From: Lepidodermella squamata
Taxonomy: Eukaryota; Animalia; Gastrotricha
Direction: 5' to 3'
NCBI GenBank assembly: GCA_047495785.1
Contig: JBLDXI010000042.1
Location: 3,348,001-3,412,000, forward strand
Length of the DNA stretch: 64,000 bases
The notes under the pieces are model-generated. The model worked only from the letters and a program-made list of their open reading frames with translations. It did no database searches and was not told the DNA's origin. Positions 3,201 to 64,000 of the stretch are shown piece after piece. A program made the position numbers and the translations under genes. How positions within the stretch are numbered: position 1 is the first letter of the stretch; the number at the start of each line of letters is the position of its first letter.

Positions 3201-4211
3201 AATATCAACAACTTGGGTTTGAGCGGGAGGTCTAATTGCAGCTGTAGTTGGAATTGTTGGCCGATTACCGCCTGCCGGCCTAGCCGGGTTTGATTGGGTT
3301 CGAGAAATCATCGACTGGTTATGATTTTGCGGTCGGCTATCGTTTGAATCGGTCAAATCGACCATCAAGCCTTCTAACCGCGGCATTTGCCACCGGTTTT
3401 GCTTTTGGAGATAGTCGAGGAAAATCGCGAGAGTTTTCGCGAAACTCCGATCTTGCAGCGAATTTAATGAATCGCGAAGTTTGATAATAGTATTTTCCCA
3501 ATGGAAATCTTCCATTTGTTTCGCGTTCCACGCAACAACTCGCTGGTCGACTAGTTCCGAAGCAACGCGAGCAACAACATATTGGAACTTGATCCCCAGC
3601 TCGAGGTTGAGTGAAAGACTGGCGGTGGTGAAAATTGTTTTGAAAACAGTCACCTGAAGAATTTTCTGCCGAATACAATCCGCCGCAAAACTATACAAAA
3701 AACCGGATTTCAGGGGAAAATGTTCGAAAAAACCGAAAACAAACGGAGCTCGCTGTTCGAAGTGATTGAAGCCCTCCTGGGTGATATCACAGGGTTTGAA
3801 AATCACATTCGCAAGTGAATCTTTCACTTGGATTATTCCTGTAGATTCGCTCGATAAGGTAACCTAAAATTAATATTGAACGTTAAAACAAATCAGGGAT
3901 ATCAAGCATACATTTTGAATCTCGTCCAGCAGTTTCAGGTAGAGTGGCCTGATGGTTTGATGCGCTTTGAAACACTGAAAAATACCATTTTCGAAATTAA
4001 CGTAAAATTGACAATATTAAAATTTTACATGGGCGAGAATAGTAGATATTGCATCTTCGAAACCACGCTGTGTGAAATACTGGTTAAGATGGCCTTCGAA
4101 TTCGTGCGCATAGTAGCCAATCTGTTCGGCGTCACCTCGAGCGGCAAATTTTTCCAGCAGCTGGCCGAGCTCGCGATCACGATTCACCGTATACCCGCCA
4201 CCTGGACGCAT
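254..4211 (-). CDS. Multi-exon divergent multi-MIF4G protein G7 with Pro/Arg-rich linkers
   Basis: ORFs 4017-4211, 2784-3827, 2189-2536, 1385-2071, 1138-1344 and 254-910 join through short GT-AG introns. The last module (FMDALLSIGDEDSLALLFEIFSGIGKLL..WWTGFFTDLAKIG..ILRDILNLKKHW) follows the eIF4G MIF4G pattern. The start codon is uncertain. Confidence 0.65.
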
Positions 4212-13253: not shown

Positions 13254-16200
13254 TTATTGATAGCCACTGAAAGGTAACGGAGTGGCAGGTACACCGGATG
13301 AGTAACTATCAGACAAGACCAAATCCAATTTTTTCAATAATACTTCAAAAATTTGTTGCGTATGATTGTCTTCAAATTCACCGAAAATCAACGAACGAGC
13401 GTATTGAAACATCAACTGGTAATCATTATAATTAGTAAAACGCATATTCGCATCGAGTTCGCCAATCATTTTAGCCAGTAAATCGCACGCATTGCTCTGC
13501 GGCCACTTTCGCTTTTCGGCCAAAATTTCATTTATCGATGATTTGATCGCGTCCGAGGTGGATTCGTGTTTTAATACGGCCGTCAGTTCGTCGAAGAAAG
13601 CGTTGAACCAAATTAAAAGGCCGTTTTCTTCTATCACAGATGAAATTTGCTCGCCGAATTCGGTTAGAATCACAGACAAACATTCAAAAGATTCGTTAGA
13701 TCTGGTAGCTAGGAAATAGTCGATCACAGAAACAACAAATTTGACATCGATATGGCCCAATAAAAACAGCTTTCCAATCAATCTGCGAAAAATATATTAT
13801 TTTAGAAAGGAAATTGAATTTTCTGACAATTCAAAGCTGAAAACACGAATTCAAGTTAAAAAACGTCATGTCGTATATGATATTATTGCACTAGCAATGA
13901 TAATAGAACCACACGTTCAAGAAGAAGACAGAAGACCATATACCATTTAACTGAGAAAAAAATACCTCGTAAAATTTAACCGCTGGATTGAGCTGGATTC
14001 TTCCGCGTTATTTGTAAGAAATTTCAAACAAAAGCGATCGAACAATTTCCGGAGATTTTTCCCTCTCCCATAGTCATTTGCGAAAAGAATAGCTGTAGCT
14101 TTCGCTGCTTCCAACAAATCAGCATCATGCGATGCCTGATCGATCATCTGAATAAAATGAATATATTTCAATTTTTTTATCGGATTATTGAACCTCACCT
14201 TTTTAATCACGATTTGCAGAAAAGTAGAGAATTCGATAGGCGATTTAATTGTCATCATTTTAATTATCAAAGGCCTTAGCCAAATGCTGGCCTCAGTTCT
14301 CAAACAAATCCCTTCCAGAGGGTCCATAATTTCTTCTTCCACGTAAGGCTTAGCAATCCACGCTCCATTCTGCGAATATTATCAGTTACGGGAAAATTAT
14401 TGGTAAGTTAACTACCTTCAGAAAATCTTGAAGAAACTGTTCAACTTCGGCTTGAGAAATGTCGCTGAAAATCTTTTTACGGGCTGCTTGAGCTAACCGC
14501 TCGGTTTTTTCTTCCCAGAATCGAATTTTATCAGCTGCCAACTTTGAGCGATCGAGGACTGAGTAAAAAGTTTGAACAACACGAAACAACGCAATATGTC
14601 CGATCTCTGACTCGTCTTGGCTGAAGAAAGCCGCATGGCTCTCGAAGGCTTCGTTGTCTACAAAACCAGAGGAATACAGCTCGCCAATGACCCTATAAAT
14701 TACAAATTTATAACAAACTAATACGGATAAATTGCTCACTTGAGTCTTGACTGATATTTTACAACGTCTGCGATAGCTTTCAACGATTTTGGCTTTCCGC
14801 AAGTCAGATTAATTTGACTCAGGCACGTAACAGTTTGCCCTTGGGACGTTTTGATTTCAATCTGAATAGAATGAAATGAATTTTGAATTACAATCAGAGC
14901 AATTTCACAAACCGCTCGCAACGCATGAAGAAAAGTTAGGCAGGTTGCTTTACACGCAGGACTTGAAGATACAAGAATCTAAATTGGTCGCTTTTCAACA
15001 CATTTTAGCGCAAAAATTAGTCGAAGCACTTACCGAGTTGAGAACTTCGACAATGCACTTCATGAATTCGACCTGAGTATTACATTTAGTGACAGCTGCT
15101 ACAATTTCATTGGTCGATGGAGATAAATCTATAAATTGTAGCTTCTTAGGGTCTTTGAGTATATCCTGCAATATTCTCTTCACGGCATCAGACGGCTGCT
15201 CTTTAATATCATCATCCGAATCGTCCAAAACAATCGGTTTTTCTGAGGTCCCTGCTTTATCGAGATTCAACACTGGCGCCTTTACAGGGACTACGGCAGG
15301 TGGAATCGCTGTTGGAGCTGTTATATCCCAACGAGATTGGCGCTTCGGCGATATTTGCTTGGGCTGATCAAGACTGGACATTGGTCTCTTGACCGGTTCC
15401 TGTTTAGCTATCGGTTGATTTATTTGCTTCTGCTGGTCAAGACTGGACATTGGTCTCTTGACCGGCTCCTGATTAGCAACCGGTTGAATCAAGGGTTCAA
15501 TTTTCTTCACTATCCATGGCGATTTCTAAATTACGAAAAACGATAGAATGTCGCGGTACCAATCGACTATAATTACCGATATGAATTCTTGCAATCGACC
15601 AAAGGTAATAGGATCTCTTATTTTAGCGATACCCACACTTTTAAGCCTCTGTACGCAATTAATCATATATATTCTCATTTTCGGACTCTCCGTGATGAAA
15701 TTGCCTGCCAGCAAAGAGTAATAACTTTCAGCCAACTCTAGGAGGTTACCTAAACCGACATTGTCATCGGTTTTAGCGTTACTTTCAGTAATGCTCCTGA
15801 AAAGGTTGATTTCGATGATTTTCCGCTTCATCAATTCGTTGAATATAGGCATTCTTTTTCGCAGCTTATCCGGCGTCACTTTCTTCATGAAAAAACTGGC
15901 GAATGCGTTGACGAGGGTCAGCGGAAATTTACTATCAGTACACGAAACAGCTATCTGAAATGAAACGGTATTTTGACTGAGAATTAAATCAAGCACTTAT
16001 TATATACCCTTTCGAAGCGTTGCAAAAGCGAAGCAAATAGCGGGGCACACTCAGGTCCGGCATCGGCGGACTAAACGATGGAAATAATTCGATAAAGTCT
16101 GAGTTGGAAAGCAGGAAAATTTCATACATAGTCAACAATAACACCAACGTTAGCAAAAAAGCTCTTCTTCGTCTTGCAGTTAACAAGCACTGGGTGAATA

Positions 16201-16426: not shown

Positions 16427-19400
16427 TCAAGTCGTTTGGTTATACGGAACACTAGTCAGCGATATCACTCGAGCCGCCGAAGAGGTAGCCGGGCTTGACG
16501 GAATTTCATTCGTACCAGGCACAACCGGCTGCGATTTAACAATTGGAGCACTTTCAACCGTATTTTGAATTATATTAGCACCAGTATTGTTGTAAACAGG
16601 TAAGGTAGGCCAGGTGTATTGCTGATACGGAATCATCAACGAAATTTGTTGAACCTGATTTTGGGAAGTTGCCAAGTCGGAGAGACAGTTTTGGAATTCT
16701 GAAAGCATTATGTCCATCAGAGAGCACCCGAATTCAGCTGGGCAGTCTTTGTAAAAATTTCGAATTCGATTTAGCACAGCGTCGTATTTTGTCTGTTGTT
16801 TGAGCAAGGCAGGTGTTAATTCTAGCATCATTAATCTCAAACGTTTCGCAGCCATCTCTTCGTCGCTCAAAACAGGCCATGAGTTCTGCAAAAAAAATCC
16901 ACAAAATTCTCAACTCTGTTAAAATTAAGGGTAATAATTTACCGATTTCAGCTGTAAAATTTCCGAAACAACAATTCGCATTTTGATTGATGAATAAGAA
17001 TTCTGCCCAATTTGAGTCAAGTCGTTGAAGAAGTTGGTCCACCACATATCCATGCAATTAGCCCGAACTTCGGCCTCAAACTGCCGACCTGCGATAACGA
17101 GAATTTCCAGTAAGACTTCCACCATTTCATCGGAAATAACGCGGCCCAATAGCGAGCCAGTGAATGATAAGAACCAATTGAATGGCATCAGTTTTTCGCA
17201 AAATAACCGGGCGATTAATCTCGCTGCGCCTAAATATTTTCGTCGCACCGATGAATCCACCGTTTCGAATTTATCCTTCAAAATCATTTGCTCATTTGGC
17301 TGTAAAAAACGAGAGTCAACACAAGAAATTCAAGCAATGAGACCATTACCGAGCTACTAGAATCAATCTCAGCGAGAAGCTTATGCAGAGTCTCTTCGTT
17401 TTCACTTCGGCTTTCGTGGCTAAATAATTTTTCATAGGCCTCCCGTAAAGACACCATAAAGCCTTTACCGCCCTCATTTTTCAACGAATCAAGCTCTGTT
17501 ACAAGTTTTAGAGCAGCTTCGAGCGAAGAATTGTTGTCGATGTTGACGAAAAGACGGTTAATTATTGCCTCGGCAGCTTCGGTAAACAAGCATGGTGTTC
17601 CGAGTGATAATAAAGTCGACTTGAGAACTTTCACCGTAGTCATAATTCCGTCACTTTTCAGGAAATTCGTCTCCAAATAATCACAAAAATTTGCGTGGCT
17701 AATAGGAGCAACTTGTTCTTCCTCATGATTCTCGCTAATTTTTGCTTTTTTGGCTTTCGATTTATTGCCTTTCCGAAACCAGCCTCCTTTCTGAATCGAA
17801 TCGATAAATATTGCGTTCAAATTTTCGCGGATAAATCAGACAAACCTTCTCAACATCTTCTAAGAATGAAGAGATTTCATCAACACGATCATGGCCAATC
17901 AAATGTTTCGAGCATGATTTTGCGAGATTTTTCGTGGCTTTAGCCCAGAAATCACGTTCTTCATCCTCATATTTCCAAGATTTGTTATCAATCAACCAAT
18001 CGACCACGCGCAAGATTTCGTAAATAAACAGCGCTTTGGCGATTTTATCAGATTGTTCGGCATCAATAGCGCGGACGAAAATCTTGAAAACACTCTTCTC
18101 CAATAAATCGAGCCGATACAGCTCCTTGGCAACGGTCAGGAAGGGACAAAATTTGGCCAAATGCTTCAGTTTCGTGAATTTTTTGTAATTCAGCACGTAG
18201 TTCGTAAAAGCTTTGCAAAGAGAGTAACTCTTTCCCTTCTTTCCTGTAACAATCGAGACTGAACGGAGGCTATCTAACAACTGAATGTAGACAGGGAAAG
18301 CCTCCGATGAAGCGCTAGAAACCTAAAAATGCGGTAATAATAAGTTTCGGTAATAAAATACATTCCATGGTCTACTATAAACATACCACTGCCCAAATGG
18401 CAGCCGCAGCCTCACAGAGGCCGTCCTTTGTAGTAATAGAACGCAATACATTTTCCATTTCATTAGCTAACGAAGGCCAATTTTCGGGAATCGTTACGAC
18501 CGATTGAAGAATTTCGTTTATTTTCTGGGTGAAGTCTTCAGTTACAACATCAGATTTCTTCGCGTTTTCAGTCGGCTCATCAGTGTGATCTGACGTGGAT
18601 CCAATAAAAGGCTTTTCTTCGAAGCCTTCGTCCACCGCGTCAGAGGTAGCTTTTTGAGCCATTTCTGCTGCAACAACGATGACAGAATCATCATCGTCAC
18701 TTTCATCCACTTTATTATCATGAGTATTGACGTTGTTAGCAGTTTCTTGGAAAACAGTCTAAACCGATGCTAAATTAATTCCATGAGATCGTAAACTTTA
18801 TGAAACTTACATGCTTATTTTTTTCGGTACTTCTGATGATATAGCGAGCAATACTAGCTCGATGCCAGCCTCCTTTCTGTTTTAGTAAACAAATTCGTGA
18901 AAACAGGTAGGAGTTTCGTAACAACGAATCTTACAAGAGGAATAGCAGCTAAGAACGCTGAAATTTCTTGCGCTTTTTTGACATCTTTAATCGTATTTGT
19001 TTGACAAGCCATGGCCAAGGTACAGCAGCAATCTTCATAGAAAGCCGCCTCAACTTCCTTGTACTTCCAAAAATTGCCATCAGCCAATTTATCGACATTC
19101 GCCATGATTTCATATAGGGCCAGCATAGAAACCTCGTCTTCTTTACATGCAAGGTCTGCAGCCAGGTATTTGAATATGCCATGCAGAATCATCTTCTGCA
19201 GGTATAATGCGTTGATTAAAGGTAACGCTTCGCGAAATTTAGAAACATCGCCGAGTTTTGTAAACTTTTTAAAGTGCATCACCCAAGATGATACAACAGT
19301 GGTCACCCTGTTAGGGCTACCTCGATTTCCATTTCCCTTGTAAATATTCTGCAAAGCTTGGAGCAGTTGAATAAATGAAGACAGCTGAGATGTTCCGCAT

Positions 19401-20512
19401 TGAATGGCGAAAATTAAGATCGCATATATTGTGTCCCGAAATTTGCCGTCAGAGCATTTCCGCAAGGAATTTTCGATTTCACGAGCGCTAGATTCAATAT
19501 CTTGAGCAGTGCCACTCCATTTTGACACAAGTCGGCGAATAAATCCAATGCAAGAACGAATGGAAGGCGACAAATCTGAGTCATTAACAACTTGCAATTG
19601 CACGGGTTTTTCAGTTGTAACAGGACGGTTATCAACAGGCTTGGGCTTCGAAGAGATTATTTTCCTGTTCCAGCCACCTTTCTAAAATTGCTCGAAAGTT
19701 TGAATAATATTCTGCAACTTTTCTAATGCATTACCGTTTTCACAGAATTAAGAAACTCGGAGATCTCTTGGCTCGTAGTGCCCTCTGTGAAGCAAGTTTT
19801 TCCATTAGTAACTCTACCGCAGCAATCGGCCCATACTCTATCTTCGTTTGGACTCAAGAAGTATAAGCCGTCATCAATTAACCTGTCAACGATCTTCAGA
19901 ATTTCGAACAAGCAAAGCAAAGCGGTATTTGGCAGTTTTCCACGATGTCTGTTGAAGTTTTGAGCAAAAAATAGGAACGGTTTTCGCTGTAATAACTTTG
20001 CACGCTCCAGATCCTCCAAAAACGGCAAGGCACTAAGAAACTCATCCAAAGGAACTTTGTCCATAGTAGGCATAATTAGACACATTTTAGATACTAGTTG
20101 ATTAACAAATAGGTTTGAACCCGAATTCGTCACTATCTTCATCTGATCAAGTGAAAGAAAGCGTAAATCATTCATAAATTTGTTGATGAAACAATAGCAA
20201 ATAAGCTTACCAAGGCTATTTCTTTTAGGAAAGAAGCGATCGTCTGTTGTTTACTGCGATTTGCGGTATATGCCTAACCATATACGATAAAATATCGTAA
20301 CTATGTCATGGCCCATTCAATTTTACCTGGGTGAGGATGACCTCAATCGCCTGGATGAATTTACCCTCATCAGATGTAAGCGCCTCCATGAACAGCCTGG
20401 CCTGACGAAAAATATCACTTTTGTAGCACGTCATTTGGTCAGCCAGTTGGGCGATAGATCGTGGATCATCATTGCCGAGCGAATGACTTCGCTTGCGTTG
20501 ATTTGCTGCCAT
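16427..20512 (-). CDS. Multi-exon multi-MIF4G protein G1 (about four modules), first gene of the left array
   Basis: ORFs 20306-20512, 19723-20175, 18854-19603, 18375-18710, 17762-18280, 17284-17820, 16925-17287 and 16427-16891. Three internal modules each end with an intron then KGGW. The last module is RRKYLGAARLIARLFCEKLM..VEVLLEILVIAGRQFE..IKMRIVVSEILQLK. Confidence 0.72.
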
Positions 20513-29730: not shown

Positions 29731-31466
29731 ATGGCGCCAAAGAAGAAGTCAGGAAAGAAAAAGTTGGCTAACATGACCGAGGAGGAGCGGTTGCTCTACT
29801 TCGAGCAGCAACGTCTTGCCGAAGAAGAGAAAGCCAAGGAAAGAGCTGCCTTTTTGGAGCGATATTTAAAGGTAATATCAATTTGTAACGCAAATTTAGT
29901 AACAGCTCTGTTATTCGATCTATTTTCAGAGCAAACTCGAGGTTGAAGAGAAAAACAGCCGGTTCAACACCAACAAGCTCAATCACCAATGGCGTAACTT
30001 CATGCGCGATGTTCGTGCCAAAGAGCTCAAGAAGGATATTGAAATTCTCAGCCAAACTTTCGAGCGTGTCGTTGACCGCAAGGAAGCTGTTATCCAACTT
30101 CTCGAGAAGGATCTCGCTGATGCTGAAGAGCAGTATGCTATGGCTTTCAGAAGCCATGTCCAGAATGTTGATCGCCTCATCTGTTAGTTGTCTATCAATC
30201 CCTTTTACTATTTATTCATGTTGTTATTCTCTAGGCATCCAAAATCAAAGGCTAAACACTCTGGAAGACGAATTTGAGATTGAGCTCGCAGTACTGAAGG
30301 AAGAGTTTGACACGGAGCGACAAGTTGTCTTCGAGCGCCATAAGTAAGACTTGAAACTCGAAAGGGTTCGATTTTATAAGTTCTCTGTTTACAGGCAAGA
30401 AATGGAGTATCTTAACGATGTTCTCTTTGCATTGGAACAACAATTTGCAGACAAGGAATTCGAACTGAGAAATGAGTTCCAGAGCAATCGCGATGAATTG
30501 AAGAACAAAAGTGTCGAAGAGAAGCACGCGCTCCGTCATGCGCTACAAGCGGCGGCTGAAGATTTGTGGAAGCAGTTCAAAGCGGCGATGGAGACCTACA
30601 AGAACAACACTGAGGAACGGCGGAAAATTTTCGAAAATCTCAAGGAAAAAGACGAGAAAGCCGCTGAAGAAATTGAGCAGCAAATGCGGAAAATTCATCG
30701 TTTGAACGAGAAAATCACAGCGATGAAGAATAAGCTGGCGGGCCATTCGCGAGAGAATGAGGCTCGTAACAAAGACATCCGAGAAGGACGGGAGAAAATG
30801 TCCCGTCATTTTCAAGAACTCAAACAGCAACTGGCTAAAATCCGCGAGCAACACAAAGCTGATCTCGGCAATTTAGTCGTCGAATCGAATCAAGCTATCA
30901 AAGACTTGAAGAAAAAGATCGAAAAAGGTGAGAAAATGCTTCGTTTGGCCGAAATGTGCCGTCGGCTTGAAACAGAGGAAGAAAAAGTTCTTCCTTTCTA
31001 TCAGACTTCGCTCACTAAGGAGGAGCAAGAAGATGTCCAACAAGCTCTGGCTGAGCCTCTTTCCGAGCCAATGGCTCAACTTATGCACGACTTCGCTCCT
31101 CTTGATAACTTCTGGAAACGATCGAATAAGGTCTGCCTCGATAAACTTGCGCTTGAGAAAGAAAGAAGTCAACTGAACGCCGAAAATTCACATCTTCGCT
31201 TCTTATTGAAACAATATCTGGACGGTAATTTTTTCTGGCGGCTTTGAAGGAATTATCTTGACTTGTTTGTTATTTTTTCAGGAATTTCTGTGAATCATGA
31301 AGTGCTTGGCGATAAGAATCCGCTTTTTGTCGTTAACAATAAGACAAATTTGAGGGTAGCAGCGCCGATTGTACCGGTTGGAGACACGCGAGTTCGAGCC
31401 CCAAGCCAAGTTGTCCTCGAGGGCGCCATCGAATGTCGACAGAAGCAGCTGATGAAACCTACGTAG
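29731..31466 (+). CDS. CCDC65: Dynein regulatory complex subunit 2 (coiled-coil domain-containing 65)
   Basis: Exons 29731-29871, 29930-30182, 30235-30343, 30395-31224, 31282-31466. [34 protein letters not shown] and LKQYLDGISV. Confidence 0.93.
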
Positions 31467-32588
31467 CTTGTTTTAAATTATTGAACGCCAATATGAATAA
31501 TTCCTTTCCATTTTATCTCAAAATGTGAATGTACGTTGCTTCATTTGTATGTGATACATTCTACAATCTACATTGTTGCTGTCAATGAAAGATCTAATAA
31601 AAAAACTTATTTTGGCGATTTATTTTTTGAAAATTTTGAGTGAATTGTTGCTCAAGTTTCGACTGCTAACATACAGTGAACTCTCTCCGTGTTACCTCTT
31701 TTATCCACTATAACGATTTCCCTCTTATAGTGATAGCTGAGGGAATAAAATGAAGAAAGTGGGCAATTATGAATTTTCGTAATAATTTACAGTATTTGCT
31801 GTAACCGTTCACTTGGTTTTATCGGCATCAGCTGGCTTTATGGCGAAATCACTCGCTTTAGTTTCCTCCTGGTATCAGAGGCCGAAGGCTGGGGTGTCTC
31901 AAACTTTGGCTCGTCTTCTTCACCAGCCTGAGAAATAACAATTTCCTAGCATTTTATCATTTTTGGGACGCTAATGCAAAGAGTCAGGCGATCAACAGGT
32001 GGTGTGGTATACGCAAACCTTATCAAAGTACGCCTCAAAGTAAGCGATAGCTGTGCGGCAGAAGATAATTAATAATTACAATAAACTAATTGACAACCGA
32101 AAAGTGCAAGCGTATTGGAGCTTTTTGCATTATATGTTGAACATTGAAAACATTTTTTTCCCATACCAAGATATTGTTTTTGTTATAGATCTTACTCTCC
32201 TTTGCTGTATGATTATAAATATTTTCTACGTGGAAATAGCTGTTTCAGCTATCGAACGCTTTAAAATGCTCAACTTTCAGCTCTTATTATTAGTTAATGT
32301 CGTTCGCGACGCGCCAAAATAACCACTTTGATGACTCATTCGATCGTACTTTGACGAGCCGAACGTAAATAAGGAGTACGTTCGGCTTATTTGGGCACTG
32401 ATCGTAATATGAATTTGCGTTCAAGGGTCGAACGAACATTCCATAAACAAGCTATAAATAGTAAAGTGGCCTTCAGCGCGTCGCTAACGATGTTTACCTC
32501 TTGTGATACTTATTATTTTAGGAGAGATGTGCCACGTTTTTCAGGGCCCAAGAATTTACAGCTGAGTACTCGTGAAAATAATTTTACC

Positions 32589-33737
32589 ATGAGCGAAGTC
32601 GGAAATTGCTCATGCGGATCGGTAATCACTTTGCATGCTATTTCTACAGCTTTTACCGCGTTAACTGACGATATTTCGGCTACCATCAACGAGTCGTTTC
32701 GAACAGGCTTCAAATCAGCTACTTCTACCCATCGAGCCATCGAGCCATCGAGCTCTGCGGCATCCGACATGATAGTGACAGTTCACGAGGATAACATGGA
32801 TATCTCAATACGCTTTCGCCGAGAATTCGACTCAGTCACGTTCGCAAAGAAAGTCTGTGATATCATGGCTCAACAAGTGAAACCCCAATTCGACGTTAAC
32901 ACCTGTATATTTCTCAATTTCTGCGTGCAATACGAACTGGACGATGAGTTGGCACGAGTTATTGGTGATGTCAAGAATGTGCTTCCGATGTGCTTCCTCG
33001 AGCACCTTATCAACAAGAGCATCGAAAATAGCTCACGCATCTTTCCACTTTTGGTCAATAATTTAGGTGAAATGGTGCAAGCAATCTTCGAGAAACGCTT
33101 CCGTATCAGGGCTTGCCTCGTCGCTCTTCGCCGCTCAGACGCCGCCAAAGTTGCTCAGGCTGAAGCCAACTTTAGTTTGGTTATTGACCAATACATGTCT
33201 CACCCTCACGACTGGTCGGAAATGTACCTTGTTCGAAATAGCTATCTAATATTACAAAAATTTTGTTCTGTGGAAATGTGCGAGAAATTTACAGATTTTG
33301 CGACATCCAGCCTTTGCCAAAGCAGTGTGGGACGTGCTGGACACGAGTTGGCTTATTATGCGAATCCTGACAGGGTATCAGGAAACCCTGAGCGAATGAA
33401 ATGCATCGTGCCCCTCCTTCGTAGCGGCATAAGAGCGAACAAATTTACAAAATATTTCCAGTGCGATGTTGAATCATTCCAAATCGATCATCGCAATTCG
33501 CAAGCTGGCAAGAGGAACCTGAGCGTATTTTATGAAATAATGTCACACTGTCACACTTCTGATCAGAATATTCGCCGCTATCGGCTAACCAATGGGAACC
33601 TCCAGATGCTGGCGCGAACTGCGATCCTCCGCCGATTGCCGATTGGGTACCGCAAGAGACGAGATGCCGTACAAAAACTTTACCTTCCGAAAGTATTGAA
33701 GGGCTACCTTGAATTTTCAGATTTGTTTTATGAATAA
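32589..33737 (+). CDS. Intronless protein with C-terminal SOCS box and unrecognised N-terminal region
   Basis: Long ORF ending LQMLARTAILRRL..AVQKLYLPKVLKGYLEF (BC box plus cullin box pattern). Probable ATG 32589, downstream of an acceptor at 32521. AATAAA at the stop. Confidence 0.75.
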   Translation: MSEVGNCSCGSVITLHAISTAFTALTDDISATINESFRTGFKSATSTHRAIEPSSSAASDMIVTVHEDNMDISIRFRREFDSVTFAKKVCDIMAQQVKPQFDVNTCIFLNFCVQYELDDELARVIGDVKNVLPMCFLEHLINKSIENSSRIFPLLVNNLGEMVQAIFEKRFRIRACLVALRRSDAAKVAQAEANFSLVIDQYMSHPHDWSEMYLVRNSYLILQKFCSVEMCEKFTDFATSSLCQSSVGRAGHELAYYANPDRVSGNPERMKCIVPLLRSGIRANKFTKYFQCDVESFQIDHRNSQAGKRNLSVFYEIMSHCHTSDQNIRRYRLTNGNLQMLARTAILRRLPIGYRKRRDAVQKLYLPKVLKGYLEFSDLFYE

Positions 33738-36978: not shown

Positions 36979-38219
36979 ATGTGGCTGTTCATCATCGCTG
37001 ACAACCTCGACCGGCGAGTTGGACGAATTTGAACTAGTAGGCGCCATGTTATTAGCACCCTGATTTGCGCCAAGCAACAGCCCTAGATTCGCGAAATTTC
37101 CGCCGAATTGCGGGTTCGGTACGGCGAAACCTGGGTGATGAGCGCCGAGCCGCATCGCCAACCTGGCAGCCATGCTTACCGGATCCGCTGCTGGAACCGC
37201 GTCGGCGTCGAGACCAGCGATCGCCGCGCCTCCACCGCCGCTTTTCATCAGCAAAAACTCGCTGAAACGCTCAGCCGGTGACATTGACAGCGACGATTTG
37301 ACGCCGCCAGACTGCGGCGACGCCTTACTGCCGCCGCCCTGTTGATCGCAATCTTCGTCGCTGAAGTGCTGCTCGCCACCAATCATGCATTCATCATCAT
37401 CATCGTCGTCGTTATCAATTATTCCCATGTGTTTCTTGATGCGCTTCTGCGCCTTTTTCCGCCGAAAATCGCCGCGTTGAAAATCACTCAAATTAGCCGG
37501 ATGAATTGCCCAAAAGTGGCCCTTGCCATTTGCACTTCGACCAACCTGGAAAAATATCAAAATTTAGCATAAATCAATTCGAAAAATCGAATATAACCCA
37601 CCTTAACGAAGCAATCATTTAGGCTAAGATTGTGCCGAATGCTGTTGCGCCAACCAGGCCCGCGAGTTCGGAAGTAAGGATAGTGATCAAGGATCCACTG
37701 GTAGATATCGCTAAGGACCATTTTCTTCTCAGGTGAGCTGAGAATCGCCATGGCAATTAGACCGATATAACTATGAGGCGGTTTCGGCTCTTCGCGAAAA
37801 CATGCCGCCATGAGATGAGGCGCCATCAAAGCCGCTGCAGCCGGATTTGACAACATTGCCGCTAACGGGTTCGGATGTTGTGGGACCGCGTTAGGGTGGT
37901 TCAAAACCGCGCCGCACATTGCCGAAAACAACTGCTGTTGCCTTTCTTGTTGTTGATAGGCAGCGGCAGCTAATGCCGAGGCGTAAGCGTTTTGAGGCGA
38001 CATTGCGTCTTGGTTCAATTGATTAGCCATCGCTTGCTGCTGTTGTTGATTTCCAAGAGCACGAGAAGCCATTTCGAGGTAGGCAGCCGCGGATAACGGT
38101 GCTAACATCGAACTGACTGAATTCTGATTGTTTTGCGGGTTGTTGTTAGCCGGCGAGTTGGTTGAAGCGCGCGACTCCGGGCCGAGTAGATTCGGGTGAG
38201 GCGAGGCGGTTTGAAGCAT
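36760..38219 (-). CDS. FOXQ2: Forkhead transcription factor FoxQ2 (467 aa, C-terminal EH1-like motif)
   Basis: Exons 38219-37602 and 37545-36760 (56-nt intron). [61 protein letters not shown]|[18 protein letters not shown], poly-Q tracts and terminal FDIDSLL. Confidence 0.92.
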
Positions 38220-45087: not shown

Positions 45088-47121
45088 TCACTGAGCAATT
45101 TTCGCTTGCTCATCATCCGGCTGCTGCAATTTGACTTTCCTTAGCAACGTCAAAACAGCTGCGGGGGTTATACCAGCTATCCGCCTCGCAGCTGCAATAG
45201 TTTTCGGCCTAGCAGCAGTTAATTTCACACGACAATCAGTCGAAACTTTCAGTTGAGAATAATCGAAATTTTCCGGGATTCTAACAATCTCATCACGCCG
45301 TAGCTCTTCGATTTCTTCCATTTGCCGTTCCAGGGGTAGTGAATAAATTGCTTCGATTTTCAGTTTTTCACACAATTTACGCCAATCCACGTCATCGGGC
45401 TTGAAATTTGAGGGAAATCGATCAGGAATAGCGCGTAACATTTCGTCAAGCTCAACATTTTCCAAAGCCAGGACTTCAAACGCACTTTTCGGGGCGTTGT
45501 TAGTCGAAACGAATACCGTATTTCCAAATGCGGATTTCAACGTTTGCTTCCAGACGCCAAAGTTCATCTTGATATCCTTCAAAATATCGATCGAATCGTG
45601 AACTCGTTTGTAAAAAGAACGAGTTCGAGCTAGCCTTTCTGCTCCGATGAAACCAGCCTCGTGAAATTTGAGGGTTAACCGCTCATCAGCGTTATCAGGT
45701 CTCAAGAAAAATCGGTATTCCGACCTACTTGTGAACATTCGATACGGTTCCATCGTTCCTTGTGTTGTCAAATCGTCAATCAAAACTCCGATGTAGCCAT
45801 CAGTTCGACTGATTTGAATCGGGTCACGATTTTTCGCCTTCAAACCAGCGTTAATTCCAGCAACAATGCCTTGAGCAGCAGCTTCTTCATACCCAGTCGT
45901 TCCATTGATCTGACCAGCAAGGAACAGCCCTGAAACAGCTTTTGTTTCTAATGAACTGTGCAGTTGATCTGGCATTATATAATCGTATTCAACACCGTAA
46001 CCAGGCCGGACTATCACGACTTTCTCCAGGCCGGTAATCGTCCTAAACATTTGAGTTTGAAACTCCTCCGGTAGTGTATTTGACATTCCTTGAGGGTATA
46101 TCAAGTTCGAGTCGAAGCCCTCCGGTTCCAGCCAAATTTGATGGGATCGATTGGGGAATCTAAGCACTTTCGCCTCGATTGATGGGCAAAATCGTGGTCC
46201 GTTTATGTCTTCTCGGACATGAGTTGTCAAATGAAGGTTACTTTTTATAATTTTATCGACCTGAGGTCCTGTATAGGCCATGTGACAAGGCATTTGTCGT
46301 TTCGGGTCGATCCAAACTGATGAGTGCATGAAAGAAAACGGAGAGGGTTGGTCATCGCCATGCATTTTTTGAAGTCGGCTGAAATCTATAGTTCTGCCAT
46401 CCAAACGAGGTGGAGTGCCAGTCTTGAGGCGACCGATTTTGAAGCCCAATTCATGCAAAGTATTGGCTAGCCCTATGGCAGGTGCATCGCCAACTCGACC
46501 AGCTGGTTTTCTCGTAAGACCAATATACATTTCACCACGCAAGAAAGTTCCCGTGGTTATCACAACTGCCTTGGATCGAATTTCAGTGCCAGATGATAGC
46601 TTAACGCCGAGGCACTTGGTCCCAGAATTTGATCGTTCAATCATGAGATCTTCCACACTTGCCTCAACCATGCTCAGATTTTCCGTTTTCGACAACTCGG
46701 CTTGGATGGCGCGCTTATAAAGAACACGATCAATTTGAGCACGATGGCCCCAGACTGCAGGACCTTTTCGTTTGTTCAAGACCTTGTATTGGACACCAGT
46801 ATAATCGCATATTTTAGCACAAACGCCGTCAAGAGCATCAACTTCTTTCATCAGATGGCCTTTGCCGATTCCACCGAATGACGGATTGCAAGACATTTCG
46901 CCAACAGTCGAAAGTTTTTGAGAAACCAAGCACGTCCGCAAACCCATTCTGGCGGCGGCTGTCGCTGCTTCTGTGCCAGCATGGCCACCTCCAACAACAG
47001 CAACGTCACATTCGATGAAAGGTAACGGCGGTTGAGCTTGAGAGCTGCAACGCCGTAACAGATACAAATATTCCCTTGTTGGATAATTTGACAGGCAATA
47101 TTTGAGATGACTCAAAATCAT
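45088..47121 (-). CDS. MTO1: Mitochondrial tRNA modification protein MTO1 (GidA/MnmG family), intronless
   Basis: 677-aa ORF with N-terminal targeting-like extension, [51 protein letters not shown] and [13 protein letters not shown]. Confidence 0.97.
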
Positions 47122-56363: not shown

Positions 56364-56750
56364 CTGTTACCTGTGCTAGTGAAATAGTTGCCTGCCTCAT
56401 GCGACAACTGAATGGCGACGTCAAGCTTGTCCCAACAGAAAAGCTTTATTTTTCCTCCGAAGCAACGACATTGAATGGCAACTTGTATTGGATGAGAAAA
56501 CTGTGGCGCTGATATCATTTTTGACGGGGACGCTGACGAATAGAGTAAATGGGCTGATAATTTGGCGACTGAAATCGCGTTTTCCTGGGACGCCCATGTT
56601 TTCTCATCCTGTTACGGCTCATAATGTGGCCAAGTTGACGCGACGTGGCTTTGTTGAGGTACCAACTGCCAGAGGTCTGCTCGCATCTGGCCAAGTCGAA
56701 TTGGGCGGATTGGCCGATACGAATAGCATTATTTTGGCGATTCAAAACAA
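56364..56750 (+). pseudogene. Inverted, internally deleted, frameshifted copy of the adjacent PPCDC-like gene
   Basis: High nucleotide identity to the reverse complement of about 57379-57863, with two internal deletions, frameshifts, a stop codon and no start. Confidence 0.9.
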
Positions 56751-57344
56751 TCGACAGCAGAAAGTACCATTGCTTGGGCAACGCAAAAACGACGGCATAT
56801 AAGCGTGAACGAATGAATCCCGTTCCGTTACTGTATTTGGACACCGCAGAAACGAAACCGAACATTCGCCTCGAACAAGCATTGAAACTGCCGCAAACCG
56901 TTGAAGCACTACAAGTAGGAATCTCTTGAATACTGATAGATAACTTACAAAATTTAACCTACTAATGAATAGATACTACCGACTTGGCTTCCACGGGAGC
57001 AGCTTTGACCGAATATTCATTCGCCGTATTCGATGATCTTCAAGATGACAATGGCCTCGACAGATCGAAAATCTGTTCCATCCAATCTATGAATGCGCAC
57101 ACGGTATTAGCAATAATCTACTGCTGCCCTTAGCCGATTCACACCACCGCCGATGTAACTTCGACACTACCTTTTGACACTCCAAGGAGCTGTTCCATAC
57201 AATCCATGAATAAGCGTATCGGCTGATTCCAAAACCATTCGAAAAAATCGTCGAGACATATGATGACTGTGTATCCAACCAACATGCGACTAGTATTGAA
57301 GGAGACATTGGTATTCATTGCGGCTCATCCATCGCCTGGTTTCA

Positions 57345-57896
57345 TTAATTTTGTAAAGAGAATGTGTGACAAGGCGTTTTGTTTTGAATCGCCAAAACAA
57401 TGCTATTCGTATCGGCCAATCCGCCCAATCCGACTTGGCCAGACGCGAGCAGACCTCTAGCAGTTGGTACTTCAACAAAGCCACGTCGCGTCAACTTGGC
57501 CACATTTTCAGCAGTAACAGGATGAGAAAACATGGAAGAGTTCATCGCTAACGCAAAAACAGCCGGCTTCGCCCGGGCGTCCCAGGAAAATGCGATTTCA
57601 GTAGCCAAATTATCGACTAGCCCATGGGCTATTTTCGCCAGAGAGTTGGCGTTCAGCGGAGCTATCAGCAATACCTCAGCCCATTCACTCAATTCGCTAG
57701 CATCGCCGTCTAAAATGATGTCAGCACCACAGTTTTCTACAAGCTGCCATTCAATATCGTTGCTTCGGAGGAAAAACAATGCTTTTTCTGTTGGGACGAG
57801 CTTGACCTCGGCATTCAGCTGTCGGATGAGGGACGCAACGATTTCACTAGCACAGGTAACAGCTACACTGCCGGTGCAGACCAATAAAATTTTCAT
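57345..57896 (-). CDS. PPCDC/Hal3-like HFCD flavoprotein, predicted catalytically inactive
   Basis: MKILLVCTGSVAV, WAEVLLIAPLNANSLAKIAHGLVDNL, AMNSSMFSHPVT. The catalytic His (LHIxL) and Cys (xCGD) positions read DASEL and ASGQ. Confidence 0.85.
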   Translation of the reverse strand: MKILLVCTGSVAVTCASEIVASLIRQLNAEVKLVPTEKALFFLRSNDIEWQLVENCGADIILDGDASELSEWAEVLLIAPLNANSLAKIAHGLVDNLATEIAFSWDARAKPAVFALAMNSSMFSHPVTAENVAKLTRRGFVEVPTARGLLASGQVGLGGLADTNSIVLAIQNKTPCHTFSLQN

Positions 57897-58009: not shown

Positions 58010-60516
58010 TCAAAAATTTTGTGAGCGAGAACAACCAGGAATACTATCGCCCGACTTGCGTTTTCTCGGGTTCGTCACAGCCCCGTCTTCACTAACCGGC
58101 TGCTCAATGGCCTCGCCTTTACAGCACATGCAACTCAGGGCCGGTAAATTACCATCACTGGTCAGTTCACAAATTCGAGCGATGAATACCTCGAAAGACT
58201 GGTCAGGCGTGCAGTTGTTAGCGTAGTGATTTCGGACGCGATTTTTCACGGCCGAAAATTTCAGCGGATTCGCAATTGTCGCAGGCGTGAATTCAAGCAG
58301 CATAAGCCGCAGTTTGTAAGGCATCATATCGTCCGGGTGGCGCGACTCGACCCAACCCTCACGCTTACGGGCTAAAATATCCGCAATTAGGGCTTTCAAC
58401 TTCGGCGATGAATGCTCCTCTTGCGCAACTCTTGTCATGTCCAAGAAAATCTGCTCCCACCAGCGTTCCATGTTAATCGAAGCTGACTCAGAAGCCAACG
58501 ATTTTCCGATCGATAGAAACATCTCGAGAAGGCCTAAGGAATAATTATAAAAATTCGAAAATTAACATTTAAAATGGAACTAAATTCTAAATAATTGCTC
58601 CAATAAAAATGAGGTCCCAGCTTCCAGCATCAAAGGTGAGCGTCCTTGCACTAAATTGTTCGGATTCTTAGCGAGTTTGGCTTTTTGGTTTTTGTTGAAA
58701 TCTTAATGATATTGGGTTCAAAGCTGTTTGATGTCGGAAAAATCACTGATTTGTGAAATCGATACTCGGAATCGATATCAGCTCTGCATGCTGAAGTGTT
58801 CATCGTAAACTGACTGTTCAGAGCACAAAATACGCGTAATATGGAGATCTATCGGCTAGCCATGTCTAGAAGTGAAACTCGAAAACCCATCTTTCGGGGA
58901 AATGTAGAGCTGCAGTCTCAAAATTAGTGCTGGAACCCCAATTTAGGGTAGGTATGCACCTGGCAAACCAAAATAATGAAATGTATACCTTCGTAAATGC
59001 TTTCATTTTTCGTCGATATAGCAGCGTCTAGAAATGACACCATCACATTGAAAGGCATGTAGTTTGCCATTTGAAGTTGAGCGACAAGGCGCGGCAGAGC
59101 GGCAAGTTTCATTCGAAAACACGAATCTTCAAGTTCATACATTTGAAACAGATCATTACGTCGCTTTTCGACAATTTCCGCCTGTAGGGTGGCTAGAGCT
59201 CGCTCGCCTAACTCGATTTTCTCGTTCAGCGACTGCGAGCAATAGCCTTGAAATTCGACGATAAAATTTTTCCCGCGATTATTACAGCACTGGTAAAAAA
59301 ATACGAAAAAAATCAGAAAAAAAAGAAAAATTGCTAAATTTACCCGACTAAGGCTGATGCACAATTTCGTTGCGAATTCAAGGTACTGCGTATTTTCGAC
59401 CTGTTCCAACATTTTCCCAAGAAAATCATCAACCAACTGTGTGAAAACATGCGGCGGTTGATTTTCCAGTCGTTGCCTGATAGTGCTGACAACTTTATCG
59501 AAATTCGCCGGCGTTTCACGAATCAAAGCACTGAGTGAAACCGAAATAGGGTCTGTTGATAAGGAAGATCCAGACGGCATATTTGACAGCGGACCTTCAT
59601 CGCCACTATCATCGAGCAATATCACTTCTTCAGCAGGTCGGCTAGGCGCGTCGCTAATTACAGTGACCATGGAATTTGAGGCACTAACTGATGCGCGAAA
59701 TAGGCCACCCTTCTACAAAATTCAGCGGTAAATTTGAGTTTTTCCCGAATTTTCATAAATTTACCTGAGATAACATGGTGAGAAAACGCTGGACATCTTG
59801 AACGGTTTTTGCAGAGAAAACACCCTTGGCACATGCCTCGCGAAGGTAGGCGATGCGTTTGTCCCAAAACGCAGCGATTCGGCGGCATTTCTCCTCGTCT
59901 TTAGCAGCACGGCCTCGAATAATTCCAGCGTCGAATTCGTCAATAACTTGAAGCAAATTGTAGAGCATCAAACTGTAGTTTGTTTCGAATTCGTTTTCTT
60001 TTTCTATCGAAACAAAAGCTCGGAAAATTGTCGGCGGCATCAAGCCCATGCGATGGCATTGAGCAACAAAACTGAAAAAAATCAAATAAAAATCCCACCT
60101 TAATAAACAAATTCAAATATTTACCGCAATTTCTTGGAGAAGAAATAAACTCGTGAAATGACGCAACCAGCTGCAACTTCGCGAAAACGAACGCAATCTT
60201 TCGAATCAGTCAGCGTGCAGTAAAGACCATGGCGGAAACAGTACATCTTTAGAGCGCCCAACATTTGGACGTAGCTTTTGGCCAGTGTCTCATTATCAGC
60301 CTCGGCCGCTTTTGTCACCAGGTCCCATATACCATTCTGATGCTGGTGTTCGTTTTGCGACTTGCCGAAAATATTCTGAAGACCGGCTATTGTTTCCGAC
60401 AAACAGCGAGTAGGATTTGCTTCGAAACGATCGATCAGAGATCGAATTTGTCTTCTCTCTAGAATTTCGGAGAAATTCAAATTAATTCAAAAGAAATTAT
60501 ACAACTCACCTGCCAT
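58010..60516 (-). CDS. Multi-exon MIF4G-family protein R3
   Basis: 7-nt coding first exon (ATGGCAG|GTGAGT at 60516-60510), then ORFs 60121-60480, 59753-60085, 58924-59670 and 58010-58522. RGKNFIVEFQGYCSQ..RMKLAALPRLVAQL..PKLKALIADILARKREGW. Confidence 0.7.
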
Positions 60517-60639
60517 AACGGAAAAATTAAAAAAAAAATCACAACAACTCTACAAAAATTAAGAAATCGATATTTCATTGATTCAGGAAAACAGAAAACA
60601 ATTACAAATACAAGTGTAGAAAAAAAAGAAATTACGAAA

Positions 60640-62765
60640 TCAATTTTTTGGCTGTTTTTTAGATACACGAGTGCCGGGAGAAGATGAACTCAATCTCTTT
60701 CGCTGAATCGGAGGTTCACTCTCAACTTCTTGCGGCTCACATTTACATGAAACACAGTTTGGTTCATTCACCTTTGGCACGGGCAGTTCAGAAATTTCAC
60801 AGATACGAGTCAAAAATTGATTGAAAAAATTAGCACAAGATTCGTGATTTACATTGGCAGTCATGGCCTGAATTTGTTTAGTAGTTATCTCACATTTCAA
60901 CGGCTTGTTAGCTAGACCACTCGTCAATTCATTGAGCAAAATCTTCAGTTCATCCTCAGGTTTCCGAATTTTTCTCATCCAATTATCGGATTGCAAGGCC
61001 ATTATCTCATTAATGAGGACTCGAAGTCTATAGGAGGTATCGCAATCCTGACCTATAGACACCATGGAAGCAAAAAAATTCGGGCACCAATTTTCAACAA
61101 TAGGATTAGTTCGGCTGTTTTCGTTAATACACGCCCCAAAATTAGAGAACAGATCCAGCAAGCCCTCGTAAATTAACTCATTTTTCGTGAATAAGGCAGC
61201 ATCGATGAAAGATGTGAGGAAAGAAGCGGGTAAAAATTTCGCTTCGAAAAGCTTTCCCATCAACATCATGCAGCTCAAATATTTCTGTCTACAATTAATT
61301 TGCATGCTTTTAAAAATGTCGATCAGATCGCTTCTGTACGATTCATTATCGCCTGATGCCAGGTATTGATCTTCGAGGCTGGAAATCGCGATATCATCAA
61401 TAACAACCTGGCTAGTCACGATTTTCATCAAATAATCTTGAAGTTCATCTTTGAAATATTTTCCAGACGTATTTTTGACATCGGTTAAGGCGGAGCAAAT
61501 CCGGCAGACAAAGCTGGATACATCCCCATCAAGCAAACGTTTGCCGAACTGAAACAAATTACGATATATAAATATGATAAAAAAACTTATCTTTTATCAC
61601 CTCATCAGCTATTTGTGCAACAATTTTCGAAAAATCTGCAGGGCCGAGATTTGATAATCGCTCCCGATAAGATTTTATTTCATCCGAATTAGGTGACTCA
61701 GCGGCCAAATTGTCAAGAGGAGCGTTTGTTTCTTCGGAAGTAGTATCCTCAATATCAGGTTCGGTTTCAGCTTTGGTTTCACATTCTTCATCCTCGATAA
61801 GAATAGGAGGGGCAGAACAAGTAACAACAGACTCAAAGTCATCAATAACAACAGAACACAGCGATTGCGATTTTTGAACAGGAATATGTTGAACTGGTAC
61901 AGTTACAGAATTTACAGGCGTTTTGTCAATCAAAGGTGCTGCACGTGTAGCCAGCTTGAGAAGCAACACTCTCGGCTTAGGATCAACAATTTTCTGGAAA
62001 CTTTTCTCCCAACCGCCGTTATTTTTTATAAAAAGAACCAGCTGATCAATCGAAGCGCCGAGGTTGAAATTGTTGATAACCCGAAACCAGACAGGCGCGT
62101 GAGCTTTCAAATGCTCAGTCATTTCCATCCAAAATTTGATGTCATTAGCGCTGAGAGAAACGCGACATTTCCGGAGTTCGAACATAGTAGCCAGAACTTG
62201 GCGCAATAAGAAGGCGGCATCGTAATGAGAGAGATCAAATTTAACCGCTTGCACGGCTATTTTTCGATATAAGCCAGGTGTATTAATGGCTCCAATGCGG
62301 CCCAATTCCATGAAAAACCACAAACGGCTGCTCAATTTATTTCGGATTTCCGATAACGAGCACGTGTCTACTGCGAGATCAGCCCAAATTTTTACCATCT
62401 CGCAAAACGAATGAGGAAAGGTCACCTTACAATGAGAAAAACTATAAGAATTGATATATTTTACATGCGTAACAACCTTTGTCAAATCTTCTAGCAGCTT
62501 GATTTCTGCAGGTGAGGCGACAGTTTTAATGCACAGCTATGAAATGTTGAAATAGTAAATTTTTGAAAAATTATTAAAAAATTACCCTATCAAGAACGGC
62601 GAACGACGCGTGCCGAAAATCATCGTACTTCTTTAATAATGAGAATAGCCGCACTATTCCTTCAACACTTTGATCGCCGCTTCGAACGCCTTGCTTCCCC
62701 AAATTAGATATCAGCTTCAAAAGCTCCGAAAAATGAACAACACTCGATGGAAGATTAAAGGGCAT
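60640..62765 (-). CDS. MIF4G-family protein R2
   Basis: Exons 62765-62586, 62536-61601, 61548-60640. GKYFKDELQDYL..RQKYLSCMMLMGKLFEAKFL..YEGLLDLFSNFGACI..TSYRLRVLINEIMALQSDNW closely parallels eIF4G (SSRIRFMLQDVLDLRxSNW). Confidence 0.75.
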
Positions 62766-62828
62766 CTACTTGATAACAAAACAAAATTTCGCTAAAAATC
62801 TGAAAATTACGAATAAATGTGTGTAAAA

Positions 62829-64000
62829 TCAACAGAATTCTTGTTTTGGAGAGCGTTTCAAGTCGATATCTGATTCCATATTCGAGCTCCGTTTTCGGCT
62901 AGTCAACGTAACACCATAAACAATCGAATTTTCTCTAACAGGAGGTTTGGCGGCAACTTCCTCATCGTCATCCGATATTACTATCAATTCCGATTCGGGT
63001 TCAGCCTTGCAGAAGCAAGGCCGTTCTGGAAGCGATTCGCTCTGGTAGACTTGTTTATTCTGGTAAGGTATAGATGGGTTCTCGAAAACACCCGAAATCG
63101 CCTGAGCAGATCCGATTGCATTTTTCTGGAGTGCAGAAATGAAAACTTGATAGAACGTATCGCACAACTTTTCGGGACAGGAACTGAGGTAATTTTTCAC
63201 CTCTTCCACGGCTTTACTCAACTTTTCAGGTTGCCTAGCTGTAATAGGATTTATCGCAGCCAGTAAAATTGACAATTTTCGAGCAGCCCGCTGCCGCCCT
63301 GATAATTCAGGCCAGTTCGTCTAATTTCGGTCATTTTTCAAAAATCAAGAATATTACGAAATTAACCTACCCTTTTCAACAAGAGAATTTCGTGAATAGT
63401 CGCTTTCATAACGTCAGAGCTCTCGTTTTGTATACCGATTTCGGACAAAGTCTCGAAACAGCCCGATAATTTATCGCTCATTCCATTAGCTTTTGCGTGA
63501 GATTCAAGGTACTTTCCAGCATCAGTCATCATTTCCATGAGACCTTCGTATGCATGCTCAGTATTCACTTTCAATAGGCTGTCCAAAAATGTCATCACGA
63601 AACCGAAAGGAACGCAATTTTTGACGTATAACAGCCCGATTATTCTACCATAAATACATAACTTCGACTGAACTCAGATAAAACCTAAAATAATACCTCG
63701 GGGTCTCAATTAAATTTCTCTTCAATGAAAAATGTAGCTCATCGACCTGCCCTCTCAACCGTTTCTGCTGCCGAGGCTGTGTTGAACAAAATTATTAAAG
63801 GTAATAAAAATATACGAAACAATACCCAATCTGATGCTTGAATTTCACACTCTAATCGCGTCAATTCGCTAGAAATATGCTCAATATGAACATGGCTGAC
63901 GTTATTCAACCAAATTTCTTGCATAACAGCCATAAAACGAACACCTTTATCGTTCACAACCTTCAAATGAGATACGTTTTTAAGAAGTTATACCAACTCA
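62829..64000 (-). CDS. 3' part of MIF4G-family protein R1 (5' end outside window)
   Basis: ORFs 63739-63966, 63362-63598 and 62829-63275. FLDSLLKVNTEHAYEGLMEMMTDAGKYLE..MKATIHEILLLKR. Confidence 0.68.

Follow-up and report, generated by a model that had tools for sequence, protein, structure and literature searches.

In translation and splicing, as well as in nonsense-mediated mRNA decay and ribosome biogenesis, MIF4G domains are the standard platforms on which eIF4A-type RNA helicases dock. CBP80, which carries three MIF4G domains, and CWC22 are nuclear MIF4G proteins. The role of these domains as platforms for eIF4A-type helicases has been reviewed (PMC9177959), and NOM1 and Sgd1 are nuclear or nucleolar MIF4G cofactors of such helicases (PMC4072693, PMC7237134). 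Human eIF4GI is SUMO-modified at two lysines (PMC4018355). The SUMO-interacting motifs (SIMs) of RNF4 have VDLT and VVIV cores, with VDLT as the core of SIM2 and SIM3, and PIAS1 has a VIDLT core with an acidic/Ser run (PMC3901395). Here, we analyzed a stretch of 64,000 nucleotides (nt) of Lepidodermella squamata (contig JBLDXI010000042.1, positions 3,348,001-3,412,000, forward strand), referred to as the window, which holds a family of genes for proteins built from several MIF4G-like modules. Three of these genes, R3, R2, and R1, stand in tandem on the minus strand at the right end of the window, as seen in the map of open reading frames (ORFs) and in the contigs of two public runs (X1 and X2). 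Six further paralogues, G1-G6, lie at the left-hand side. The short motifs in the linkers and tails of this transcribed poly-MIF4G family are non-random and partly conserved across species. Their likeness to SIMs and to nuclear localization signals (NLSs) suggests that the R1-R3 scaffolds may act in the nucleus under SUMO control.

Results

SIM patterns in linkers and tails

The scored set consisted of the nine family proteins (R1-R3 and G1-G6; 7145 residues), of which the unalignable linkers and tails make up 1205 residues. Linkers were defined as hmmalign insertion runs; an earlier definition by low hydrophobicity was dropped since the SIMs themselves fell out of it. We used the SIMa, SIMb, and SIMr patterns that PMC3395311 cites from Vogt and Hofmann, with SIMr given there as [DES]3[ILVM]x[ILVMF]2, and did not tune them. 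These published patterns replaced a definition of our own, in which a core of four residues had to be followed by a strict flank and which missed three-residue cores and caught strings inside domains.

Six pattern matches were found in the linkers and tails, spread over six proteins (R1, R2, R3, G1, G2, and G6), compared to 0.54 in within-segment shuffles. A count of six was reached in none of 20,000 such shuffles (Poisson P about 2e-5). The preliminary description of this DNA had named shuffled linkers as the background to which the motifs should be compared, and the outcome of that comparison was clearly positive. When the nine whole proteins were scored, 11 matches were seen in 8 proteins, whereas block and global shuffling produced 3.1-3.4 (P about 6e-4). 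Five of the 11 match SIMr within domains, where a helix begins with acidic residues; these are probably structural and were discounted. Family linkers carry 5.0 SIM-pattern matches per 1000 residues versus 0.28 per 1000 in 146 canonical MIF4G proteins, which is an approximately 18-fold difference (Poisson P 1.5e-6). SIMa or SIMb was present in only 14% of the 146 canonical proteins.

The individual motifs are given in Table 1. All eleven motifs quoted in the preliminary description were recovered on the minus strand by a six-frame scan, and all fall within exons. Their recurrence in linkers that are otherwise unalignable, which it had also put forward, was borne out, since the motifs lie within insertions left unaligned by hmmalign. 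All six strict linker SIMs are inside such insertion runs; structure was modeled only for the R2 tail, where the stretch with the Cys motif and RKR is disordered in the AlphaFold model of the last exon (predicted local distance difference test, pLDDT, about 40-60). One string that had been listed as SIM-like, SVVIDDFE of R2, matches none of SIMa, SIMb, and SIMr. Of the six linker SIM matches, four to five have a Ser or Thr beside the core that is placed as in S-x-x-D/E (SDDDEE, SGDE, SDDD, and a DESDDDD run). A Ser in S-x-x-D/E beside the core is the layout of phospho-regulated SIMs. In G6, the core MVDLT precedes DSNDS; its VDLT is identical to the SIM2 and SIM3 cores of RNF4 and close to VIDLT of PIAS1.

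The two public runs also provided some variation, within the species or between near species. Across X1 and X2, only one coding change falls within the R3 motif, an A>T at 59611 that turns D into E, and X2 has an in-frame 3-nt insertion at 62939, between the R1 SIM and the R1 RKR. This variation is compatible with motif constraint and far too thin as proof of it. The G2 linker that contains PIVLDDSDDD also holds a tandem duplication of a unit of approximately 23 residues (QEPVKRPMSSLDQ.KQI, twice) at 15364-15471 on the minus strand.

Motifs in relatives from other assemblies

Nine paralogues were aligned over their last module (A1), and a profile made from this alignment was searched against 1.84 billion protein representatives, which gave 827 matches with a best E-value of 2e-25. 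Among the best 150 of these 827 matches, only four representatives were family-like (P0005, P0011, P0008, and P0014), and they originate from ENA and Logan metagenome assemblies. The contigs of the relatives (L001/L004/L005 and L002/L003) carry family genes in tandem that are 22-29% identical to the genes of the window. In gene 2 of L001, CIDLTVDS follows the Trp that closes one MIF4G-like module and CVCKEE follows the Trp of the next. G6 has LMVDLTDS and CTCKVE in the same order and at the same linker positions. The preservation of psi-DLT and CxCKxE in this order at 22-29% identity is best explained by constraint or selection. Thus, the proposal that the recurring motifs are under selection was supported by two motif types at equal linker positions in a distant relative. 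Also, gene A of L002 has a strict SIMr (DDS-MTLL) with acidic flanks, gene 1 of L001 has two near-miss copies of EVVSNDSG, and strong basic clusters come after the G-G-W/I motif in P0011 and P0151. A word-based protein search with the last exon of R2 found no match and was uninformative, since its length window does not cover full-length relatives.

Two other features of these proteins were seen. D-S-G after a V/I/L pair occurs in R3 (LLDDSGDE, 59596-59610) and in the relative L001 (VVSNDSGD and LEVSNDSG; ~2010-2030 and 2190-2215), and DSG is also found in G4 (QDSGVFF, window ~9600). The spacing of a beta-TrCP-type site, DSGxx(x)S/T, fits both L001 copies and does not fit R3. After its last MIF4G module, P0151 has a tail exon (L002 9204-10571, plus strand) with a low-complexity region of about 450 residues, including poly-Q and a long K/E-rich stretch, which has no counterpart in the genes of the window.

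Cys motif and basic clusters

The preliminary description had placed a small Cys motif before each C-terminal basic cluster. The motif is indeed present, but its constant C-K-x-E ending had been overlooked. Four proteins of the window (R1, R2, R3, and G6) and one metagenomic relative have the full motif, C-x(1,2)-C-K-x-E, with K-x-E in all five copies. In the scored set, C.{1,2}CK.E occurred 4 times compared to 0.03 expected, and RKR occurred 8 times in 7 proteins compared to 1.1 expected; neither count was ever attained in shuffles. A Pro is usually located 1-4 residues upstream of the Cys motif and acidic residues are located downstream. When the R1, R2, and R3 tails were aligned, the Cys motif and the RKR cluster fell in common columns, and the remainder of the alignment was gap-ridden. 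Read most simply, CxCKxE would be a regulatory site that has been conserved. Its K-x-E, with acidic residues downstream, could be SUMO-acceptor-like, or the motif could be one half-site of an intermolecular metal clasp.

Several other readings of the motifs were considered and rejected. An autonomous zinc finger needs four ligands, and each motif provides 2-3 Cys and zero His within the quoted 6-7 residues. The Cys residues are away from the C terminus, so a prenylation (CaaX) signal was discarded. A reading as an LC3-interacting region (Atg8 motif) failed because there is no aromatic residue, and the spacing was unsuitable for a nuclear export signal.

Classical NLSs are either monopartite, K-K/R-x-K/R, or bipartite, with two basic residues, a spacer of 10-12 residues, and three basic residues among the next five; the PROSITE bipartite rule has a spacer of 10. 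By these rules, R1 is an exact bipartite fit, R2 fits only with an 11-residue spacer, and RKRK of R3 misses K-K/R-x-K/R. As candidate NLSs, the basic clusters are weak to moderate matches. G1 has a basic cluster at the start of the protein as well (MAANQRKRSHS, 20480-20500, minus strand), which is presumably similar to the import signal at the N terminus of CBP80, the cap-binding protein with three MIF4G domains.

Identity of the modules

The claim that this cluster encodes MIF4G proteins was confirmed by profile searches in both directions and by AlphaFold models, for which Foldseek found matches to eIF4G HEAT1. A Pfam search with single exons of R1-R3 gave no MIF4G match. Two paralogue exons gave sub-threshold Pfam MIF4G matches (E 3e-4 and 8e-4) to the correct half of the profile, and the best single-exon score for PF02854 was 21 bits compared to the Pfam gathering cut-off of 30.8. 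With the last exon of R2, the nearest clusters in the ESM Atlas were MIF4G clusters (score 0.93) and a phmmer search of the PDB found eIF4GII (E 0.0046). The best matches of the A1 profile were either eIF4G-like or canonical proteins that carry 2-4 MIF4G domains, and they themselves match PF02854 with E-values of 1e-60 to 1e-143. AlphaFold models had a pLDDT of 84 for the last exon of R2 and 88 for a complete upstream module of G1, which has ten helices. The top Foldseek matches of these models were eIF4G HEAT1 (E 4.6e-4, TM score 0.61), which ranked first for the R2 exon, and the MIF4G domains of eIF4GII, DAP5, PAIP1, and UPF2.

Homology between the last module and the N-like modules upstream of it was supported by hhalign (E 1.8e-6, 189 columns). 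K/N-G-G-W closes each module, with a conserved Trp at that place in the consensus of alignment A3, and we read it as the family version of the N-N-W motif that ends canonical MIF4G domains. The family proteins are strings of 2-4 divergent MIF4G domains of the eIF4G HEAT1 type joined by linkers that are probably disordered. Module ends coincide with introns (e.g. 59712, 19681, 17790, and 7078), and the following exon usually begins at K/N-G-G-W. The agreement between module boundaries and intron positions suggests that the arrays grew by exon-level duplication.

Gene models and neighboring features

R1, R2, and R3 are transcribed and spliced genes. Public run X1 is RNA-like: its contigs skip approximately 11 stretches with CT..AC ends on the plus strand, corresponding to GT..AG introns of minus-strand genes. 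The ten short introns defined by RNA joints and one more placed from the sequence are 49-54 nt long; a single intron, in R3, has 455 nt. From the N to the C terminus, R3 has a single MIF4G-like module, a linker, the last MIF4G module, and a tail. G1-G6 were modeled with a small splice-aware dynamic program, which recovered R2 and R3 exactly. The paralogous pieces at 250-20500 share 25-33% identity, and the identity between tandem copies is 25-30%. The poly-MIF4G family is lineage-restricted, rapidly diverging, and tandem.

Table 1. Coordinates of the poly-MIF4G genes and of their linker and tail motifs in the window
Feature	Positions	Strand	Remarks
Gene R3	58010-60516	(-)	613 residues, stop-free with X1 joints
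R3 exons	60510-60516, 60125-60458, 59765-60071, 59344-59712, 58989-59289, 58010-58533	(-)	
R3 introns joined in X1 contigs	58534-58988, 59290-59343, 59713-59764, 60072-60124	(-)	n=4
Gene R2	60640-62765	(-)	657 residues, stop-free with X1 joints; layout as in R3
R2 exons	62586-62765, 62477-62536, 61601-62425, 60640-61548	(-)	
R2 introns joined in X1 contigs	61549-61600, 62426-62476, 62537-62585	(-)	n=3
Gene R1	62829-64000, continues past window edge	(-)	3' part only
R1 exons within window	62829-63320, 63371-63644, 63697-63776, 63826 onward	(-)	
R1 introns joined in X1 contigs	63321-63370, 63645-63696, 63777-63825	(-)	n=3
Left-hand paralogues G1-G6	254-20512	(-)	six tandem genes, 3-4 MIF4G-like modules each; approximate models
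R3 linker EEVILLDDSGDE	59596-59631	(-)	SIMa (VILL+DDS); CK2-type Ser
R2 linker PILIEDEE	61784-61807	(-)	SIMa
R2 linker SVVIDDFE	61832-61855	(-)	SIM-like; three-residue core, outside all three published patterns
R1 tail ELIVISDDDEE	62958-62990	(-)	SIMa (LIVI+SDD); between Cys motif and basic cluster
G1 linker DESDDDDSVIVV	18672-18707	(-)	SIMr (reverse type)
G2 linker PIVLDDSDDD	15208-15237	(-)	SIMa; absent from the preliminary list
G6 linker LMVDLTDSNDS	3336-3368	(-)	SIMb; absent from the preliminary list
R3 tail CMCCKGE	58112-58132	(-)	C-x-x-C-K-x-E
R2 tail CVSCKCE	60736-60756	(-)	model pLDDT below 50 for residues 258-270
R1 tail CFCKAE	63000-63017	(-)	
G6 linker CTCKVE	2066-2083	(-)	directly after K-G-G-L end of third MIF4G-like module
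R3 basic cluster PRKRKS	58052-58069	(-)	
R2 basic cluster QRKRLS	60688-60705; span 60646-60705	(-)	KKQPK 11 residues on; loose bipartite; disordered in model
R1 basic cluster SRKRSS	62883-62900; span 62844-62900	(-)	10 residues, then KRSPK

The only long intron of R3 (58534-58988, intron 5, 455 nt) holds a very high-copy repeat with its core at 58597-58795. In run X2, the summed contig depth of this repeat was approximately 26,000, compared to approximately 100-170 in most other bins and 907 in the neighboring bin. One X2 contig is without 417 nt of this intron (58562-58978) and has 10 other letters instead, which suggests an insertion polymorphism. A search for inverted repeats in the long R3 intron found none, including no terminal inverted repeat, and there is no second copy of the element in the window.

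R3 is adjoined by an intact gene for a flavoprotein of 183 residues (57345-57896, minus strand; PF02441, E 1.4e-24) that is phosphopantothenoylcysteine-decarboxylase-like. A decayed partial inverted copy of this gene is located approximately 600 bp away (56383-56799, plus strand), in pieces with 55-94% protein identity and in several frames. The genes between the two MIF4G clusters include an intronless MnmG/GidA (MTO1-type) ORF of 677 residues (45088-47121, minus strand; E 2e-153), a Forkhead domain (37557-38219, minus strand), a SOCS-box protein (32391-33737, plus strand), and a sperm-tail/NYD-SP28-associated domain (30351-31247, plus strand). The last of these implies an animal with motile cilia or flagella.

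Discussion

The best explanation of these findings, which we favor tentatively and at somewhat less than an even chance, is that MIF4G arrays with selected SIM and NLS motifs are SUMO-guided nuclear scaffolds for ribonucleoproteins (RNPs) or helicases. The basic clusters would work as importin-alpha-type nuclear import signals. The V/I/L beta-strand cores with acidic flanks would dock into the SUMO groove on SUMO-modified partners, and this docking would probably be tuned by CK2-type phosphorylation of the adjacent Ser. The MIF4G modules would hold DEAD-box helicases or RNP components, as is usual for MIF4G domains. A more elaborate version, which we put forward as an improbable one, is a nuclear system private to this lineage. 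In it, SUMO-marked chromatin or RNPs would recruit the scaffolds through the SIMs, and the modules would load DEAD-box helicases. Rapid diversification would be driven by an arms race (e.g. with transposons or viruses), and CxCKxE would serve as a switch for the pairing or regulation of the paralogues, working either through SUMO acceptance or as a metal clasp.

Other explanations could account for part of these data. SIM patterns are short and degenerate, and acidic linkers that contain V, I, and L could yield SIM-like strings by accident of composition. The five helix-start artefacts among the 11 whole-protein matches and the failure of SVVIDDFE to match any pattern formally are in keeping with this. 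However, not one of the 20,000 shuffles reached the observed linker count, SIM patterns are about 18 times as dense as in canonical MIF4G proteins, and the four copies of CxCKxE, with another in a relative, stand against an expectation of 0.03. Chance is thus already largely refuted and very improbable. It is also doubtful that the motifs are leftovers of duplication, i.e., recognizable by inheritance and without a present function. R1-R3 are tandem paralogues in whose tails the Cys motif and RKR can be aligned, and the SIM-like motifs of R2 and R3 lie in homologous linkers, as would be expected of leftovers. But the motifs have persisted where the surrounding linker has diverged beyond alignment, SIM matches are also found in the non-homologous linkers of G1, G2, G6, and R1, and psi-DLT and CxCKxE have survived in the relative in spite of its low identity.

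Another possible explanation is that the short linear motifs are selected and that their partner is something other than SUMO. The candidates include another ubiquitin-like protein and an adaptor of a phosphatase or a ligase (B56-type LxxIxE or beta-TrCP-type DSG). The strand could also fold back onto its own basic cluster or onto a MIF4G surface in an autoinhibitory manner, and RKR-x-S could be a kinase site instead of an import signal. The enrichment and the recurrence across species show constraint and point to no partner in particular, and the hydrophobic core has a DSG after it in R3 and in two places in the relative. On the other hand, all three published SIM types were matched, including the very specific VDLT core, and the B56 and beta-TrCP patterns fit at most one or two instances. 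We regard a partner other than SUMO as rather unlikely, though it is the strongest of the alternatives.

Several points weigh against SUMO-guided nuclear scaffolds. The SIM hypothesis was picked after seeing the sequences, and with a few hundred motif classes to choose from, the enrichment P is corrected to near 0.006. No strict linker SIM was found in G3, G4, or G5. In the five genes of the relatives, there was one strict linker SIM, with CIDLT and EVVSNDSGD (twice) as near misses, and two single-protein scans of JGI metagenomes found no relative, so that no orthologues of R1-R3 were obtained. With just 3-4 basic residues each, the basic clusters are short, and those of R2 and R3 fall outside the strict NLS classes. 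Also, a Ser is located within two residues after RKR in R1, R2, R3, G1, and G5, which makes a basophilic-kinase site an equally good formal reading and is shared with the kinase-site alternative above. The commonest SUMO acceptor consensus is [IVL]KxE (PMC3395311), and the Cys motif departs from it because the psi position is Cys in 5 of 5 copies. Lastly, the preliminary description had seen the combination of NLS and SIM on MIF4G proteins as unusual. This does not hold for the nuclear half, since nuclear MIF4G proteins such as NOM1 and Sgd1 are already known, but the SIM layer does seem undescribed: a literature search found no paper that combines MIF4G with a SUMO-interacting motif.

If the linkers bind SUMO, they would connect SUMO signaling directly to helicase and RNP scaffolding. 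They would also offer a way into the function of a large gene array that evolves fast and currently lacks a known role. If they do not bind SUMO, the family would be a clean example of selected short linear motifs in freely diverging linkers.

The closest described systems share parts of this arrangement. The modules are like eIF4G HEAT1 and PF02854 in their ten-helix HEAT fold, in the N-N-W-type end, here K/N-G-G-W, and in their best profile and fold matches, and several MIF4G domains per chain are also found in UPF2, which has three. Unlike canonical MIF4G proteins, the family has no MA3 or W2 domains, and its single exons score below the Pfam gathering cut-off. It has a private helical extension after the last domain and is arranged as a tandem array with 25-30% identity, and it is nearly absent from public data (the four representatives in the best 150 of 827 matches). 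NOM1, Sgd1, and CWC22, as nuclear helicase cofactors, are the functional model that we propose for the domains of the family, but each of them combines a single MIF4G with an MA3 domain, and their genes are conserved and single-copy. To our knowledge, no SIMs have been reported for these three proteins. SUMO modification of eIF4G links the eIF4G family to the SUMO pathway, but is different from non-covalent docking by linker SIMs in a paralogue that would be of the nuclear type. Compared to RNF4 and PIAS1, the family usually has one or two motifs per protein and not a cluster of four, and has no RING or SP-RING, with the motifs attached to MIF4G arrays instead. What it has in common with RNF4 and PIAS1 are the V/I/L cores, the acidic or phosphorylatable flanks, and basic clusters in the same proteins.

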